Sequence record: NC_061451.1
DNA length: 64,000 nt
Strand: one strand, 5' to 3'
Shown: positions 10,115 to 59,488 of the stretch, piece after piece
How the letters are laid out: every line of letters begins with the position of its first letter
How positions within the stretch are numbered: position 1 is the first letter of the stretch
Notes under the pieces: generated by a model
Database searches by the model: none
Told to the model about the DNA's origin: nothing
What the model saw: only the letters and a program-made list of their open reading frames with translations
Position numbers and translations under genes: made by a program

Positions 10115-10816
10115 ATGAACACAGTCTACCTGCCGTCTTTGATTGATGCGCTCAACAACTGCCGCTTCTATGCAGCGAACATGATCAACATTCAGTTCAA
10201 CATGCATCTTGAGGCATGTCCTCCTGAGCATCCTGAAGTGCCAGAAGAAGATCATCAACTGCTGGTGGCTCGTATCGCTCAGGAGTTTGATAACGCAGTT
10301 AGTCGCACTGACCTGCGCTGGGATGCAAAGCCGCTGATTCACCGCTTCCGCGCACTGCACTCTCAGTATCTTACTGCGGTTGGCGGTGAATTGCAGTTCG
10401 ACCGAATCCCGGAACTGTCTTATACGATTCCGTTCCCGTTCACTGAGAACACACCGCCTGATCGTGAGATCGCGCGTCGTCATCTGCGTTACACTGGCGA
10501 ACAGGTTCGCGCATATCAGTACATGGTCTGCCTGTCTCGCTACACGCACAAGGAGGAGACGTACTATCTGCCTTCTCCTCCTGACCAGTTTGAAATGCCT
10601 GACGTTGATGCATCACTGCCTTTTGATAGCGCACAGTCACAGATCGCTGGTATCTTCCTCGAACACTATCAGCGCGTTGAGCCTCCTCGCTATCGTGAGC
10701 AGGCGCTCCTCGAAGAAGTGGGTCGTGAGAAAATGCTGCCTATGATCTCTCAGTGCCGTTTCTGGATTTACAAGGCATTCCCTACAGTTATTGAAAAGGT
10801 TGAAACAAATGACTGA
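10115..10816 (+). CDS. hypothetical protein
   Basis: 233-aa co-oriented ORF. Confidence 0.75.
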   Translation: MNTVYLPSLIDALNNCRFYAANMINIQFNMHLEACPPEHPEVPEEDHQLLVARIAQEFDNAVSRTDLRWDAKPLIHRFRALHSQYLTAVGGELQFDRIPELSYTIPFPFTENTPPDREIARRHLRYTGEQVRAYQYMVCLSRYTHKEETYYLPSPPDQFEMPDVDASLPFDSAQSQIAGIFLEHYQRVEPPRYREQALLEEVGREKMLPMISQCRFWIYKAFPTVIEKVETND

Positions 10817-45839: not shown

Positions 45840-45883
45840 TGGACAAAACAGCGCTTCTTAACGAGGCGCTTTTCTGCTATAAT
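45840..45883 (+). promoter_or_regulatory. early promoter, family member 6
   Basis: TGGACAAAAC-N28-TATAAT with extended TG. Confidence 0.8.
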
Positions 45884-51306: not shown

Positions 51307-51351
51307 CTGGACGAAATAAGGCTACTCTGCTTAGGCTGCTTATGCTATAAT
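51299..51351 (+). promoter_or_regulatory. early promoter, family member 7
   Basis: GCAAATAACTGGACGAAAT-N28-TATAAT with extended TG. Confidence 0.8.
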
Positions 51352-51393
51352 ATGCGTGAGCAGTCATTTATCATATTCTCAAGGGAGAAACGT

Positions 51394-55393: not shown

Positions 55394-55446
55394 AAAAGCG
55401 TAGCTTGTGCTGCGCTTTTTTACTTTCTGTCTGAGGAGACAACAAA

Positions 55447-56095: not shown

Positions 56096-56533
56096 ATGAA
56101 ATTTGATCAAGCACCAACGAAAGCACAACTCGTGCTGCTGGCCCTCGCTCTCGAATCCGTTCTCCTCTCTATGGAGAAAACGTTTATCAACCGTAATCTG
56201 CTGGAGCAGTTACTTGCGAAGTACGGCATCTCGTTTAACGATCTGAAAGAGTTGCGAGAGTACGGCGAAAAGCATTCCGCCATCGGTACCAGCGTTGCTC
56301 AAGTTATGGAGATAGCTGCCTTGCATGTGGCTCATCTGAAAACAGAACCTGTGCCTGAATACAGTCAAGACGACCTTGATCTAATTCGCGTAGAATACGA
56401 GCCAATCGATACGTCTGTCCTACGCCAGGGCGCTGTGAATGATGGGGTTATCACAGTGCAGCAAGCAGCCACTTTTGAGCGCGATCAGATACTGACTGCT
56501 ATTCTTGAGTACCGACTGCGCTCAGAAGCATAA
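56096..56533 (+). CDS. hypothetical protein
   Basis: GAGG RBS. Confidence 0.7.
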   Translation: MKFDQAPTKAQLVLLALALESVLLSMEKTFINRNLLEQLLAKYGISFNDLKELREYGEKHSAIGTSVAQVMEIAALHVAHLKTEPVPEYSQDDLDLIRVEYEPIDTSVLRQGAVNDGVITVQQAATFERDQILTAILEYRLRSEA

Positions 56534-56580
56534 ATCTGGACAAAATCGTGGTTGTAGCAAAAACCGTCCTATGTTATAAT
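56528..56580 (+). promoter_or_regulatory. early promoter, family member 9
   Basis: GCATAAATCTGGACAAAAT-N5-TTGTAG-N17-TATAAT with extended TG. Confidence 0.9.
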
Positions 56581-56586
56581 AGAGAT

Positions 56587-56789
56587 GTAGCGTAGACGTG
56601 AGGTATGCGCTATAAATTGAATGACGCGTTTTTGCTTGACTGTAAGGTAGCGGTATCTTACAGTCCTTTTTCAAGTGGCTTCGAAGTTTGAGGCTTCTTG
56701 CGAAAGGTCAAATGTACCTTTGAGCGTTTTCGGATTTACGCGGTTTTCACCGACTGCGCTCTCACTTTAAACCGCAAAGGAAATACATC
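56587..56789 (+). ncRNA. candidate structured leader/small RNA 1
   Basis: About 200 nt non-coding with several hairpins, including GACTGTAAG/CTTACAGTC followed by CTTTTT. Confidence 0.5.
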
Positions 56790-57611
56790 ATGCCAGAAGC
56801 ACGCAAACCTCGCCCAGCTGATCGTTTCGCTAAAGCCCGTGCAGAGAAAAACTCACCGGAGCGTCAAGATGCGGCAGCCCAGCGCACGTATAAAGACACT
56901 CCGCCTAAATCTGTTCAGGTGAAACTTGATGCTGTGGCAGCTTCTAAGAAGAAAGTTTCTCGCGGCCCCAAGGCCTCTCGTCCACGTCAGTCGCCTGCTG
57001 TTGACGCAGCACCAAAGCCTCGCATTCGTGATGAGGAACGTGTGTACAATCTCGTACACATGATTCTCTCTGCGTGGAAAGCCGATGCAGAAAACGCGGC
57101 AGCAAGTGTGGGAATCATTAAAGTGTCTCGTCGTAAGATTGAGGGTGCGTTACGCGATCTCAAGAATACGCGCTTCACTAAAATCCCAGGCTTAATCAAT
57201 GACGTGCTTGTCTACAATGAACTGGTAGCTGAGTTCGGACAGTGGGTGTACGTCGAGCACGACAGTCCTGATTGGATTTTTGTGCGCCTGCCTGAAAACA
57301 GCACGCCTGTGATTCGCGCTGACATTAGCTATGCCAAGACGGGTGAAACTTCCACGTCTGTTTCGACTTCTAGTGAAGTTCTGCTGAAAGATCTTAGCGA
57401 AGACGAAGAAGATGAGATCCCCGAGAATGTCGAGTACGACGATGCGGACGAGACTGACGAAGACGAAGAGGAGCCGTATGACTACAGCGCTTGGTCTCTG
57501 CGTGACCTGCAGGAGTATGCGAAGCGCTATGACTTCTTGCAGCCCGACACTGAGGGGTTTGATGATCGCGAGAAGTTGATAGCAGCCATCGAGCTGGGGG
57601 AACAGCACTAA
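56790..57611 (+). CDS. basic-then-acidic protein with C-terminal HeH-like motif
   Basis: K/R/A-rich N-terminus; D/E linker; SLRDLQEYAKRYDF...DREKLIAAI. Confidence 0.75.
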   Translation: MPEARKPRPADRFAKARAEKNSPERQDAAAQRTYKDTPPKSVQVKLDAVAASKKKVSRGPKASRPRQSPAVDAAPKPRIRDEERVYNLVHMILSAWKADAENAAASVGIIKVSRRKIEGALRDLKNTRFTKIPGLINDVLVYNELVAEFGQWVYVEHDSPDWIFVRLPENSTPVIRADISYAKTGETSTSVSTSSEVLLKDLSEDEEDEIPENVEYDDADETDEDEEEPYDYSAWSLRDLQEYAKRYDFLQPDTEGFDDREKLIAAIELGEQH

Positions 57612-57665
57612 GCACAAATATGGACAAAATAGTGGTAGCATCTAAAGCATGACCTGTGCTACACT
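57612..57665 (+). promoter_or_regulatory. early promoter, family member 10 (no ORF follows)
   Basis: GCACAAATATGGACAAAAT-N29-TACACT with extended TG. Confidence 0.8.
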
Positions 57666-57671
57666 ATAGAT

Positions 57672-57780
57672 CGAATGCCTTGTAGTTTTTTGACTGTGAG
57701 TTACTTTCCGGCTCACAGTCCTTTTTAAAGTGCTCTCCCAAGAACGCTTTAAAAAGCACAGACTGCCTGCGCTTTTGATA
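57672..57780 (+). ncRNA. candidate small RNA 2 between two promoters
   Basis: GACTGTGAG/CTCACAGTC hairpin and CTTTTTAAAGTG/CGCTTTAAAAAG hairpin; no credible ORF. Confidence 0.55.
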
Positions 57781-57784
57781 GACA

Positions 57785-57837
57785 GCATAAATCTGGACAA
57801 AATCATGGTTGTATCAGAATGCTGCCTGTCATACACT
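57785..57837 (+). promoter_or_regulatory. early promoter, family member 11
   Basis: GCATAAATCTGGACAAAAT-N5-TTGTAT-N17-TACACT. Confidence 0.8.
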
Positions 57838-57898
57838 TTAATGAGTCGAGCAATAGTGCTCGCAACAAACTAAATCCCAATACTGAGGAGTATTACAC

Positions 57899-59488
57899 AT
57901 GGCACGTTTCGAAACTAACACTAACCTGGTTGGCAAAACTATCGTCCTGCTGAACGGCACCAAAGCGAAGATTGAAGACGCTATCGTTTCTGGCTACAAA
58001 GTGAAAGGCCAGACCAAGCGCATCGCAACCCGTGACGTTATCAAAGAGGGTGCGCACTTTAAAGAAATCGAGCGCACGCCGCTGAGCCAGCTGGAAGATA
58101 CTGGTGAAGGTTATGTGAAGTTGAAAGAAGCCAAAGCTGCTTCTAAGAAAGCGCCTGCGAAAGACGCTAAAGCTACTGGCAAAAAAGCTGCGGCAAAAGA
58201 CAAGCCTGCTAAGACCAGCAAAAAAGCTGCCGCTAAAGATAAGCCAGCGAAAGAGCAAGAGCCGAAAGTTCGCCGTAAGTCTGCGAAAGAGCAGGGCAAC
58301 GATTATCAGGAACTCGCGCAGGCTATCATCAAAGGCGGTCGCCGTGCAGCGCCAGTTGAAATTGACAGCGTAGACGAAGCGCTGACCGATGCAATCGCTA
58401 AGCGTCTGACCGCTGTTGTCGAATCGTCTGAGATTGCGAAACTCGCCGCTGATAACAAAACGCCGATCGCTAACGCACTGACCGTAACTTACGGTGCTGA
58501 GTTTGCGACTGATGCAAACGTTGTGCAGATTACGCTGAACCTGCAATACGCTAAGCCGACTGCTGTTGAGTCTGCCGCTCCTACTCTGGAGAATGCCGAA
58601 GCAATCGCAATGCGTGCTGCTAAAATGGCCGCGCCGAAAGTGAGCGCTAAACTCAAGAAGGCAGTGCGTGAAGCATTCGATATTGAAACAGACCTTGAGC
58701 TGGGTACTGTGATTATGTCAGGCGATGATCAATTCGCTTACTACGGCGAAAGCGCGAAGCACGCTGGCAAAGCGCTGCTGTATGTTGTCGAAACTGACAA
58801 GTTCAAATCTGTCTTGGCCTCTACTCTGACCGACTACGAACTGCCTGCTGATGAAGAAGCTGAGGCAGAAGAAGAGGAGGAAGAAGAAGAGGAGGAAGAA
58901 GAACCCGCTGATGACTTCGACGACGAAGAGGAAGAAGATGCGGACGATGCAGATGATGCCGACGATGCTGATGGCGACGACGACGAATTCCAGTACGTTG
59001 CTGTAGGCGATGAACACTTTGCTCTGGTCAACAAAAAGATCACAGCCAAGTATCACGATGCACTGGCTGAGCAATTCGGCGTTAGCACCGAAGCGCTGGT
59101 CCCAGGCTTAGTGTTGACCAACGGCGAGATCACTTTCGCTTATCTGGGCAACGATAGCAAAGGCGGCCTGCTCGTTATCGACCTCGACGACGATGCGGAC
59201 GAAGACGACAACGTTCTGGTCTACCCGAAAGCCGACGTTAAATCTCTGACCGACTTCTCTCCTGTGCTGGGTGATGCAGATGAAGAAGACGCAGACGATG
59301 CAGAAGAGACCGACGAAGAAGACGAAGATCAGGACGACGACTTCGAATTTGACGATGCGCCGACTGCCGACCTCGAAGATCTGTCCGACGATGAGCTGCG
59401 TGACCGCGCTGTTGAGATGGGCCTGACCACTGTACGCAAAGCTGACAAAATGAACGCCAAGCAACTGCGTGCGCTGCTGTCTGAATAA
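57899..59488 (+). CDS. large multi-domain acidic protein (histone-like K/A linker, repeated domain, C-terminal HeH)
   Basis: AKKAPAKDAKA tract; D/E tracts; DLSDDELRDRAVEMGL...MNAKQLRALL; GAGGAG RBS. Confidence 0.8.
   Translation: MARFETNTNLVGKTIVLLNGTKAKIEDAIVSGYKVKGQTKRIATRDVIKEGAHFKEIERTPLSQLEDTGEGYVKLKEAKAASKKAPAKDAKATGKKAAAKDKPAKTSKKAAAKDKPAKEQEPKVRRKSAKEQGNDYQELAQAIIKGGRRAAPVEIDSVDEALTDAIAKRLTAVVESSEIAKLAADNKTPIANALTVTYGAEFATDANVVQITLNLQYAKPTAVESAAPTLENAEAIAMRAAKMAAPKVSAKLKKAVREAFDIETDLELGTVIMSGDDQFAYYGESAKHAGKALLYVVETDKFKSVLASTLTDYELPADEEAEAEEEEEEEEEEEEPADDFDDEEEEDADDADDADDADGDDDEFQYVAVGDEHFALVNKKITAKYHDALAEQFGVSTEALVPGLVLTNGEITFAYLGNDSKGGLLVIDLDDDADEDDNVLVYPKADVKSLTDFSPVLGDADEEDADDAEETDEEDEDQDDDFEFDDAPTADLEDLSDDELRDRAVEMGLTTVRKADKMNAKQLRALLSE

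Follow-up and report, generated by a model that had tools for sequence, protein, structure and literature searches.

We describe a structured RNA module that occurs twice in the early region of the Erwinia jumbo phage pEa_SNUABM_7/14 (Snuvirus), within the 64,000-nucleotide stretch of record NC_061451.1 that was analysed here (the window). Each copy is a two-part module of plus-strand RNA, made up of a hairpin of free sequence (H1), a near-invariant C followed by five U's (C+U5), and a second hairpin (H2) in which this U-run pairs with an A-run downstream. Most likely the module acts as a transcription stop or attenuator rather than as a set of guide RNAs. In the particular form that we favour, and to which we hold tentatively, it would join a weak intrinsic terminator to a helix formed only in read-through RNA; the termination, the role of H2 and the activity of the promoters are what we infer from structure, conservation and position. 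An earlier note on this DNA had proposed a family of hairpin RNAs, one of them alone behind a promoter with no ORF; this RNA-level family and the conservation of the ORF-less promoter were borne out by the analysis, whereas the functions offered for them, namely small RNAs with guide loops, an antiterminator switch or a DNA operator, were not.

Two copies of the module in the window

The pattern TTGACTGTRAG-N8-14-CTYACAGTC matches the window solely at 56636-56665 and 57690-57720, both on the plus strand, and gave no match in 100 shuffles. The 9-bp stems (GACTGTAAG/CTTACAGTC versus GACTGTGAG/CTCACAGTC) differ by a single compensatory A-T to G-C exchange, the loops (gtagcggtat in copy 1, ttactttccgg in copy 2) are unrelated, and TT on the 5' side and CTTTTT[C/A]AAGTG on the 3' side flank both copies, so that all three traits by which the pair had first been singled out are confirmed by the sequence. 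Upon RNA folding (z-scores of −4.1 and −4.2 for the two copies), a second hairpin using the U-run, as had also been claimed, forms directly 3' of H1 in both, and in copy 2 has 12 bp including one G-U pair and extends to 57756. The hairpins, the compensatory pair and the second hairpin are all present, and none of them is expected by chance. Across the nine Snuvirus-group records, which comprise eight phage isolates, one of them deposited twice, neither element varies (100% identity). The parts of the two copies are as follows.

56638 to 56665, plus strand: H1 of copy 1, 12-bp stem including one G-U pair, loop GCGG, −15.0 kcal/mol
56666 to 56671, plus strand: C+U5 of copy 1, putative terminator U-tract, doubling as the 5' strand of H2
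56666 to 56706, plus strand: H2 of copy 1, lower stem CCUUUUUCAAG/CUUGCGAAAGG, upper stem GGCUUC.../...GAGGCU
57692 to 57720, plus strand: H1 of copy 2, 11-bp stem including two U-G pairs, 7-nt loop, −14.9 kcal/mol
57721 to 57756, plus strand: C+U5 (57721-57726) and H2 of copy 2, 12-bp lower stem CUUUUUAAAGUG/CGCUUUAAAAAG with one G-U pair, 3-bp upper stem

Covariation and the level at which it acts

In the alignment of H1 and H2, 98.5% of the cells are paired and 9 of the 25 pairs change on both sides (6 of 11 for the H1 pairs), with a compensatory A-U to C-G change in H2 at alignment columns 51/79. None of 500 shuffles reached these pairing and covariation values, and pairing fell to 28-59% in slid controls. 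Since the alignment holds 34 G-U cells against 4 non-pairs, the molecule concerned is RNA and the strand is plus. Compensatory changes and numerous G-U pairs together uphold the RNA-level structure that had been claimed for this strand, and the further covariation in relatives on which that claim had been made to depend is found in H1 as well as in H2.

We judge it very improbable that the element is instead a dyad operator at which a repressor binds the DNA, or else a gene for a tRNA or a tRNA-like RNA. The repeat is inverted, as an operator would be, but its half-sites covary rather than keep their sequence, so that the conserved symmetric half-sites of an operator are missing, and the excess of G-U cells over non-pairs argues in the same direction; we reject the operator that the earlier note had held out as an alternative. 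The tRNA reading concerns the leader around copy 1 and is weighed with it below. Rfam yielded no relevant family, either with gathering thresholds for the whole window or by E-value for the two elements and the SNUABM_13 leader. The module defines a family of structured RNAs, supported by covariation, for which Rfam has no entry and for which the only annotation in the relatives examined is one spurious tRNA call.

A family in four phage genera

In the pEa_SNUABM_7/14 genome a covariance model finds exactly two copies; it also detects the module in Alexandravirus, in Yoloswagvirus, where there are at least four copies, and in Rivsvirus. The proposed family is thereby substantiated, with paralogues as well as orthologues spread over four genera of Erwinia jumbo phage. 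The model also gives minus-strand matches, since H2 and its reverse complement are almost the same sequence. The other 200 kb of the genome yielded no match with an E of 10 or better, and the module is confined to the early region. We provide the model and the coordinates for transcript mapping.

Almost the sole sequence common to the 19 scorable modules from the four genera is the C+U5 after H1, which lies directly 3' of H1 in 17 of them, the exceptions being U4 in AD1 and UC+U5 in SNU35; two spacer modules of SNUABM_5 follow the same plan with U6. The H1 stems are otherwise unrelated (for example GACUGUAAG, GACCGUGUG, GGGCGUACAAUC, GCCAGG and GGCCCGACUGCC), with 9-12 bp in the relatives and with loops often of 11-50 nt, many of them long or branched (16-50 nt). 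H2 is of near-constant length in all members, 16-19 bp with an internal loop, while its upper-stem sequence varies, and 0-1 unpaired nt separate it from H1. Over its whole length the module measures 73-80 nt in the window and in the nearest relatives, and up to ~104 nt in Yoloswag. In H2 the 5' strand is without exception the one that carries the U's, and the imperfect H2 helices (copy 1, SNUABM_5, the 'par3' copies and Yoloswag no. 4) have changes on the A-side with the U-run retained, which indicates selection on the sequence of the U-run itself, beyond its part in pairing.

The surroundings of the modules are less constant. The Alexandravirus par3 copies and Yoloswag no. 1 lie directly 3' of the stop codon of a 60-63-aa ORF; two extra ORFs follow par3 in Alexandravirus and none in Yoloswag, and Snuvirus is without par3. 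The module is doubled in tandem in the Yoloswag leader, and Alexandravirus lacks both promoter P10 and copy 2. An IMG/VR (viral_contigs) scan with the H2 pattern returned only this clade, a few weak AT-rich matches and one convincing analogue, in which hairpin-CUUUUUAAAG-hairpin-CUUUAAAAAG ends a Cro-like early operon on an unrelated lambdoid contig. As a separate observation, short ORFs begin at ATGTCCGATGA in the H1 loops of Yoloswag and SNUABM_5; we do not regard these as coding, as there are none in the window, those of SNUABM_5 are without a Shine-Dalgarno sequence, and the similarity of the peptides is explained by nucleotide homology.

The module might alternatively serve RNA processing or stability, H2 stacked on H1 being a double-stranded substrate for RNase III or another nuclease of host or phage, a reading that we consider unlikely though deserving of attention. 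In the T7 early region there are RNase III sites at which cleavage at gene boundaries leaves protective hairpins, and in the sib/tI retroregulation of lambda only the read-through RNA forms the cleavable helix. The near-constant length of H2, its abutment on H1, by which the two could stack into 28-30 bp, the location of modules at gene boundaries or just upstream of a Shine-Dalgarno sequence (par3, for example) and their restriction to the early region would all suit such a substrate, and processing could be combined with termination in the manner of sib/tI. Processing leaves unexplained, however, the constant position of the U's on the 5' strand and their retention despite drift of the A-side, and what follows copy 2 is a promoter rather than the start of a gene.

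Copy 1 in the leader of ORF 56790

Copy 1 forms the 5' domain of a conserved, structured leader (5'UTR) of ~200 nt, defined here, that serves ORF 56790 and is better conserved than the surrounding genes; its order is H0, H1-H2, H3, H4, a possible pseudoknot and the Shine-Dalgarno sequence. Its parts other than copy 1, with the promoter and the gene, are listed here.

56537 to 56580, plus strand: predicted early promoter P9, UP-like decamer TGGACAAAAT (56537-56546), −35-like TTGTAG (56552-56557), extended −10 TGTTATAAT (56572-56580)
56586 to 56614, plus strand: H0, 5'-terminal hairpin of the P9 transcript in the MFE fold
56703 to 56721, plus strand: H3, hairpin AAAGGU-CAAAUGU-ACCUUU, overlapping the 3' end of H2
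56722 to 56761, plus strand: H4, hairpin with outer helix GAGCG.../...CGCUC and inner helix UCGG/CCGA
56740 to 56781 (Shine-Dalgarno sequence included), plus strand: possible pseudoknot, by complementarity, of GCGGUUU (56740-56746, H4 loop) with AAACCGC (56769-56775)
56777 to 56781, plus strand: Shine-Dalgarno sequence AAGGA, adjoining AAACCGC
56790 to 57611, plus strand: ORF 56790, 273 aa, basic N-terminus and acidic C-terminus, the gene served by the leader

Relatives carry a hairpin of different sequence at the position of H0, and their counterpart of H3 is the T-arm-like GGGTTCGATACCC. The H3 helix is 100% paired, with two pairs changing on both sides, and in H4 four pairs do so, including a G-C to A-U change in SNU13. 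The two pseudoknot strands are complementary in all 14 sequences, with one G-C to G-U as the sole variation, so that the pseudoknot is possible and covariation lends it no support. Orthologues of ORF 56790 stand behind the same leader in all relatives. Its product has only a weak Ish1 match in Pfam and none in PHROGs, and protein-family searches of the flanking ORFs gave no function. Compared with SNUABM_13, a block replacement begins in the window at the border of H2 and H3 (56708).

We note, separately, that H1 of copy 1 covaries with its orthologues. Two further candidates in this region were discarded: an internal promoter in copy 1 (TTGACT-N17-TACAGT, score 9/12), which is absent from copy 2 and from the relatives, and a triple covariation of U-run, AAAGGG and CCCUUU in SNUABM_35, whose changes belong separately to H1 and H3.

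The tRNA reading takes its appeal from the SNUABM_13 record, which annotates a 95-nt tRNA-Glu(ttc) at the position of copy 1; ARAGORN reproduces this call in the SNUABM_13 genome only, with none in the window and none in seven other relatives, and the Rfam tRNA model has no match even at E=10. The strand that would be the acceptor, GAGCG, pairs downstream in H4, for which reason we reject the cloverleaf; the compensatory change there occurs in SNUABM_13 itself, and the upstream partner of GAGCG is broken in three sequences. D and anticodon arms are likewise incompatible with an H1 of 9-12 bp and a long H2. The annotation is not supported as a tRNA and is corrected here.

The predicted promoters and the spacer of copy 2

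The window has seven promoter-like sites, recognised by consensus: the TGGACAAAAT decamer is followed, after a spacer of 28-29 nt, by TAnAnT, in most of them with TGn. Among the annotations of the record is an RNA polymerase ADP-ribosylase, and no phage RNA polymerase is annotated in the feature tables inspected, those for parts of the genome outside the window, which fits early transcription of the sigma-70 type. From P9, transcription is predicted to start near 56587. Two further sites enclose copy 2.

57621 to 57665, plus strand: predicted orphan promoter P10, TGGACAAAAT (57621-57630), extended −10 TGCTACACT (57657-57665)
57794 to 57837, plus strand: predicted promoter P11, TGGACAAAAT (57794-57803), −10 TACACT (57832-57837), serving ORF 57899-59488

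Copy 2 lies downstream of the stop codon of ORF 56790, and transcription from P10 is predicted to start near 57670-57673. Only two plus-strand ORFs of at least 20 aa touch the spacer, namely a 47-aa ORF with a GTG start, which runs through the promoter that follows, and a 44-aa ORF (57819-57953), which begins at an ATG within P11 and overlaps ORF 57899, and the nine matched Snuvirus-group records annotate no feature in it. The lone position of copy 2 behind an ORF-less promoter, a point of the earlier note, proved to be conserved: Yoloswag has an equivalent ORF-less promoter upstream of the module with the exact 28-nt spacing, SNUABM_5 has a weaker one, and the layout promoter-module-promoter is found in three genera (Snuvirus, Yoloswagvirus and Rivsvirus, the promoter being weaker in the last). 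The spacer H1 is kept across genera through compensatory changes (GACUGUGAG, GACUGUGUGGCG and GACUGCUUAUCG with matching 3' strands), and in the nascent P10 RNA it is the sole predicted structure.

One could imagine that P10 makes a discrete, trans-acting small RNA of ~55 nt, consisting of a 20-nt 5' tail (AUCGAAUGCCUUGUAGUUUUUU), H1 and the U-tail, which would act on mRNAs of the host or the phage or else titrate a protein (Hfq, for example), with attenuated RNAs from copy 1 doing likewise; we regard this as rather improbable. Small RNAs of the Hfq type have a single-stranded 5' tail, a U-rich stretch, a hairpin and a U-tail, and copy 2, with a promoter of its own and a single-stranded 5' part of 20 nt, shares all of these. 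A promoter and terminator that would give a discrete RNA are predicted for copy 2 only. That Snuvirus, Yoloswagvirus and, in weaker form, Rivsvirus keep a promoter with no ORF ahead of the module would be in keeping with such a gene, as would AAUGCCUUGUA, common to the copy 2 tail and the SNUABM_1 leader. Against it stands first that the U5 tail is short for Hfq binding, and then that most members are not independent genes: copy 1 is part of a 5'UTR, and others follow stop codons without their own promoter. The loops, moreover, do not behave as the variable guides they had been taken for. That of copy 2 is homologous to a conserved loop of the Alexandravirus leader, and a search of the whole 265-kb phage genome, with both loops, the 5' tail of copy 2 and the upstream segment of copy 1 as queries, turned up no complements beyond 10-12-mers. 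The best complement was a single 12-mer (window 10769-10780), which lies in coding sequence at a distance of 29-40 nt before the next start codon and not at a ribosome-binding site, with ~0.35 expected by chance per query. Complementarity in the phage genome is at chance level only, and the search gave no conserved seed with complementary targets.

It is also conceivable, though we strongly doubt it, that only copy 1 matters, cassette recombination having left copy 2 and P10 behind as a scar with no function, the leader of a gene since lost. The early region is mosaic, ORFs coming and going beside modules and promoters as around par3; the block replacement from 56708 relative to SNUABM_13 and the absence of P10 and copy 2 from Alexandravirus agree with such a history, and PeSL cassettes mediate shuffling of this sort in T4-type phages (PMC2839356, PMC4122927). 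A scar would hardly be expected, however, to retain the promoter-module-promoter layout in three genera, to maintain its H1 through many compensatory changes or to keep the exact 28-nt spacing of the Yoloswag promoter.

A proposed weak terminator and a helix of the read-through RNA

Let us then consider how the favoured combination of weak terminator and read-through helix might operate. The module would act in cis on plus-strand transcripts of the early region, made by the host RNA polymerase. H1 (about −15 kcal/mol, variable in sequence, length and loop) together with C+U5 would constitute a modest factor-independent terminator, and polymerases stopping there would release short RNAs of ~85 nt from P9 and ~55 nt from P10. 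Those reading through would transcribe the A-run 25-35 nt further on, which could fold back and pair with the U-run, giving H2 as a helix of 16-19 bp that stacks immediately on H1; since the A-run is made only on read-through, H2 would exist only in read-through RNA, where it would bury the single-stranded U-tract and provide the downstream mRNA with a compact, protected leader. Being the first terminator-like signal after ORF 56790, copy 2 would also close that transcription unit, and it would insulate P11 and ORF 57899 from upstream transcription. The same order of synthesis would make a terminator/antiterminator switch through the second hairpin, as formerly suggested, kinetically unworkable, because the A-run is transcribed after the termination decision.

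Both sites are called by a simple terminator scan, and the stems in the window (11-12 bp, −15 kcal/mol, loops of 4 and 7 nt) match the G+C-containing stem of 5-14 bp with a short loop that characterises an intrinsic terminator. The U-tract is present but short, with a tail score of 2.25 versus 4.29 at a reference site (50103), and an approximate d'Aubenton-Carafa-type score, computed with modern energy parameters, is −24 and −26 for the two copies versus about +18 for that reference terminator. With a short U5, a C before it, A's after it and a negative score, termination at these U-tracts would be weak at best. The positions, after stop codons and at the end of the lambdoid early operon, fit transcription punctuation, whereas the H1 loops of 16-50 nt or branched form in many relatives are unusual for efficient terminators. 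A terminator in the leader of a conserved gene would cut its expression unless relieved, so that, if the module attenuates, the early genes need a relief mechanism. Termination alone does not explain the conservation of H2 or the confinement to the early region.

Attenuators of the lambda PR'-tR' type, in which a leader terminator gives the short 6S RNA, share with the module a stable hairpin of arbitrary sequence followed by a U-tract, soon after an early promoter or a stop codon, and a short abortive RNA is predicted here as well. They differ in that here five U's follow a C, H1 loops are often long or branched, the termination is a predicted one, and a conserved second helix captures the U-tract in read-through RNA. 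Lambda sib/tI is alike in that terminated and read-through RNAs fold differently, the 3' partner being made only on read-through; sib, however, extends the terminator hairpin into an RNase III site, whereas here the U-tract has a separate hairpin.

Relation to cis-acting RNAs and promoter cassettes of other phages

The putL and putR RNAs of HK022, ~70 nt with two stem-loops, are cis-acting antiterminators (PMC9378689). By analogy, the nascent two-hairpin RNA could bind the polymerase that is making it and render that polymerase resistant to pausing and to terminators further downstream, which we think improbable. The size of 73-80 nt, the two stem-loops 0-1 nt apart and the location behind the early promoters P9 and P10 recall put, as does the existence of two similar copies behind early promoters with structure-preserving differences between them, a likeness drawn from the description of put. 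On the other hand, stem I of put is not followed by a U-run like that of a terminator, and such a run, conserved here right behind the first hairpin, would oppose antitermination; put, which binds the beta-prime zinc-binding domain of the polymerase, depends on specific bulges and a triplex, whereas H1 is free in sequence and size; and par3 and Yoloswag no. 1, after stop codons, lie far from any promoter.

Jumbo phages of the Alexandra-, Snu-, Yoloswag- and Rivs-types serve as fire-blight biocontrol agents. The module may, as a minority view of our own, lie at the core of an undescribed control of early transcription in Erwinia jumbo phages that rely on the host polymerase, be it by put-like reprogramming in cis or by a small RNA or protein decoy in trans; the orphan promoter would then be kept in three genera solely for the two-hairpin RNA, and a T-loop leader riboregulator upstream of ORF 56790 would cooperate with it. 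A put-like or small-RNA role, in place of attenuation, would make the module a new class of riboregulator.

Close to the arrangement of the region as a whole are the PeSL cassettes of T4-type phages, early promoters with stem-loops acting as terminators or attenuators (PMC2839356, PMC4122927). Common to both are repeated sigma-70-like early promoters, here the seven TGGACAAAAT sites with 28-29-nt spacer and (TGn)TAnAnT, whose upstream part is AT-rich and which have stem-loops beside them, concentrated in a plastic region that is made up of small ORFans and where gene gain and loss and recombination junctions fall at the cassettes; here the block replacement at 56708 is such a junction, and ORF content beside the modules differs between genera. 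The Erwinia phages are, however, not relatives of T4 by sequence, as far as tested, and PeSLs have no counterpart of H2. The PeSL stem-loop lies within or next to the promoter, whereas the H1-U5-H2 module is a separate unit downstream of the promoter or after a gene and is itself outside the promoters. Of the seven promoter spacers in the window, only two fold strongly (−11.5 and −11.7 kcal/mol), and one hairpin, at 51334-51365, spans a promoter −10.

The early region and its two modules

The window is 100% identical to the Erwinia amylovora jumbo phages pEa_SNUABM_7 and pEa_SNUABM_14 (Snuvirus, 265 kb), its position 1 corresponding to approximately 186,001 of NC_061451.1. Seven promoter-like sites in it follow one plan, TGGACAAAAT, a spacer of 28-29 nt and TAnAnT, with an extended-10 TG in most. 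Judged by this consensus, they would be early promoters of the sigma-70 type, with a UP-like element upstream. An RNA polymerase ADP-ribosylase is annotated in NC_061451.1; the feature tables examined, all outside the window, list no phage RNA polymerase. Two instances of an RNA module lie among the last of these promoters, each consisting of a first hairpin (H1), a C+U5 run, and a second hairpin (H2) of which the U-run is the 5' strand (L-numbers below denote fetched comparison sequences).

42420, 45840, 51308, 55350, 56537 (P9), 57621 (P10), 57794 (P11): promoter-like cassettes, decamer TGGACAAAAT at a fixed 28-29 nt 5' of a (TGn)TAnAnT -10
56638-56665, + strand: H1 of copy 1, followed by C+U5
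56666-56706, + strand: H2 of copy 1, U-run as 5' strand
57692-57720, + strand: H1 of copy 2, followed by C+U5
57721-57756, + strand: H2 of copy 2, U-run as 5' strand

All the features that the earlier note described here are present, and their joint pattern gives two matches against none expected; the observation is solid and exceeds chance. Copy 1 lies within the 5'UTR of ORF 56790 (56790-57611), ~50 nt 3' of the predicted P9 start. For copy 2, the predicted P10 start is ~20 nt upstream and P11 ~35 nt downstream, and the spacer holds no credible ORF, as had been claimed. With its repeated early promoters, adjoining stem-loops and gained or lost neighbouring ORFs, this region parallels the hyperplastic, PeSL-rich regions of phages of the T4 type (PMC2839356, PMC4122927), and the seven cassettes resemble the PeSL cassettes of those phages. 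Strong hairpins lie within the spacers of the cassettes at 45840 and 55350, and a hairpin at 51334-51365 spans the -10 of another.

Covariation and the level of selection

In an alignment of 11 sequences, both window copies among them, H1 and H2 are paired in 98.5% of cells, with changes on both sides at 9 of 25 pairs. None of 500 shuffles came up to these figures, and pairing fell to 28-59% when the partners were slid. The alignment holds 34 G-U cells against 4 non-pairs. Acceptance of G-T together with exclusion of A-C is not expected of a DNA dyad or cruciform; the structure is therefore selected in the + strand RNA, and the G-U excess rules out the dyad DNA operator that had been offered as an alternative.

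A family across related phages

The homologous region was retrieved for 11 distinct relatives in the 'phages' collection, and more came from IMG/VR (viral_contigs). Each Alexandravirus genome, Dickeya phage AD1 included, has one copy 1 orthologue in the leader of its ORF 56790 orthologue. The same holds for Yoloswag (Yoloswagvirus) and pEa_SNUABM_5 (Rivsvirus). Among genomes, H1 stems vary with complementarity kept: GACCGUGUG/CACACGGUC, GACCAUGUG/CACAUGGUC, AGUCGUGUG/CACACGGCU, GACCGUGCG/CGCACGGUC, GGGCGUACAAUC/GAUUGUACGCUC and GCCAGG/CCUGGC.

A covariance model built from the 11-sequence alignment, the copy count that the earlier note had proposed, finds only copies 1 and 2 in the whole SNUABM_7 genome (the window plus five fetched pieces), and further members in relatives outside the training set. 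Yoloswag has four copies and a partial one (54.5, 40, 32, 29 and 20 bits), and SNUABM_5 a leader copy (46 bits) and a second (20 bits). Weaker but consistent scores (16-20 bits) mark par3, a copy in a separate intergenic region of the examined Alexandravirus genomes, placed after a 63-aa ORF and before the next gene, without a promoter (L002 2098-2208; equivalents in L003, L004 and L006). It is a larger, branched member, GGCCCGACUGCC...GGCAGUUCGGGUC, CUUUUU and a second hairpin; the equivalent junction in the window phage has 7 nt only.

Every folded copy has the same architecture: H1, 0-1 unpaired nt, C+U5, H2. H1, whose sequence is unconstrained, forms a stable hairpin of 28-70 nt that is branched in some copies; H2 totals 16-19 bp, the U-run pairing with an A-run downstream. 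C+U5 is nearly the sole sequence common to paralogues and directly follows H1 in 17 of 19 scorable modules (the exceptions are U4 in AD1 and UC+U5 in SNU35; the two SNUABM_5 spacer modules have U6). The U's of H2 are on the 5' strand in every case, and in imperfect copies the A-side is altered and the U-run retained. The modules form a genuine RNA family, supported by covariation and previously unannotated.

The orphan promoter and the spacer module

The layout of promoter, module(s), next promoter and ORF 57899 orthologue (57899-59488 in the window), with no intervening ORF, recurs in Yoloswag and SNUABM_5, and is therefore no private accident of Snuvirus. The Yoloswag spacer has a promoter with exact 28-nt spacing and an H1 starting with the same TTGACTGTG; that of SNUABM_5 has a tandem pair of modules and a weaker promoter. 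Position-equivalent H1 stems in the three genera, GACUGUGAG, GACUGUGUGGCG and GACUGCUUAUCG, show several compensatory differences, and the loop is partly common to Yoloswag and SNUABM_5. Alexandravirus lacks this promoter and module and has a G+C-rich hairpin without U-run in their place. A trans-acting small RNA made from P10 would fit an orphan promoter, yet we regard it as rather improbable, and the proposed reading of the hairpins as guide RNAs found no support.

The loop segment shared by Yoloswag and SNUABM_5, ATGTCCGATGA(A)TACGCG (L037 4467-4598; L038 5403-5537), opens short ORFs of 43-44 aa, with no Shine-Dalgarno in SNUABM_5 and no counterpart in the window; it is probably conserved loop sequence rather than a gene.

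In Snuvirus, copies 1 and 2 have near-identical H1 stems, whereas copy 1 orthologues of other genera differ in stem; this likeness suggests sequence exchange between the two copies within Snuvirus. That copy 2 is itself a recombination scar seems very unlikely.

Possible mode of action

Tentatively, and at somewhat less than even chances, we read the module as a modest intrinsic terminator or attenuator (H1+U5) plus a helix, H2, specific to read-through. H1 and U5 would stop transcription with modest strength; H2 would form only after read-through, and would then sequester the U-tract and compact the leader. Such signals are defined by just this combination, a free-sequence hairpin with a near-invariant U-run after it, and conservation of the U-run as sequence goes beyond the need for pairing. 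The positions of the modules, 3' of stop codons and shortly downstream of early promoters, also argue for it, as does the same design closing the Cro-like early operon of an unrelated lambdoid contig. Against it, however, the U-tract is short, with a C in front of it, a d'Aubenton-Carafa-type d-score is negative, many H1 have long loops, and the module occurs, even in tandem, inside a leader whose gene is conserved. Termination also leaves H2 and the restriction to the early region unexplained. A processing or stability signal is an unlikely though not negligible alternative, and a polymerase modifier resembling put (features as in PMC9378689) a distinctly improbable one. The switch suggested earlier, with H2 opening the terminator, would come too late to work, the A-run being made 25-35 nt past the decision point. 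Attenuation with a read-through-specific helix, a variation on an already known type of function, is most likely; a more novel reading, to which we give a minor chance, survives through the conservation of the orphan promoter and through the T-loop leader.

The lambdoid-type contig (L031 1562-1624, 41.9 bits with the covariance model) has a Cro-like gene alongside a CI-like repressor, and the element closes this early operon: GCCCC-loop-GGGGC, CUUUUUAAAG, hairpin, CUUUAAAAAG, the same terminator-plus-U/A-hairpin design.

The leader downstream of copy 1

Over the stretch between the end of H2 and the start codon, which takes in two further hairpins, H3 and H4, mean column identity is 88% across four genera; megablast with a 3-kb query covers 24-39% in those genera, chiefly coding, at 75-82% identity. 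Over the four genera, 12 of 14 variants have GGGTTCGATACCC as H3 (e.g. L003 2990-3010), which amounts to a canonical T-arm stem capped by the loop TTCGATA (TTCAATA in SNUABM_3); SNUABM_35 shows a compensatory G-C to A-U. The window has GGTCAAATGTACC (56703-56721) instead of this T-arm-like sequence. Relatives' H1 loops retain GG, which could dock on the T-arm mimic. Compared with SNUABM_13 (L001), the window carries 20 differences across 56708-56789 but not one across 56500-56707, which marks a block replacement with its recombination junction at 56708, where H2 borders H3 within the leader.

H4 (56722-56781 region) has an outer helix GAGCGCG/CGUGCUC and an inner helix, with both-side changes at four pairs. 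GCGGUUU in its loop is complementary over 7 nt to AAACCGC immediately 5' of the Shine-Dalgarno AAGGA, and the two could form a pseudoknot translational operator; the complementarity is invariant, hence covariation lends this pairing no support. An AAAGG is shared by the H2 3' end and the H3 5' strand, and with CCUUU present twice and AAAGG twice more, alternative pairings of these repeats with the Shine-Dalgarno are conceivable.

In GenBank MZ475891 (pEa_SNUABM_13), copy 1 is overlain by an annotated tRNA-Glu(ttc) of 95 nt (window 56633-56727; L001 2506-2600). ARAGORN reproduces the call in SNUABM_13 alone, where the T-arm is kept and the H1 loop, GGUAGCGGUAUC, is D-loop-like, which explains it. 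We do not take this to be a tRNA: a single genome yields the call, the site has no match to the Rfam tRNA model, and what would be the acceptor strand is paired with downstream sequence. The annotation is probably false.

Neighbouring features

The predicted transcript of the 55350 promoter begins AAAAGCGUAGC-UUGU-GCUGCGCUUUUUU (55394-55425, ~+1 to +32), a perfect A-run/stem/U-run hairpin of bidirectional-terminator type, ahead of ORF 55447. The ORF 56790 and ORF 57899 proteins each have a basic Lys/Arg/Pro/Ala-rich N-terminal part, very acidic stretches and a short terminal helix-extension-helix/SAP-like motif, and may be DNA-binding or DNA-mimic proteins. The former has a weak Pfam Ish1 match (E=0.009), and the latter belongs to phrog_33433, a family with no assigned function.
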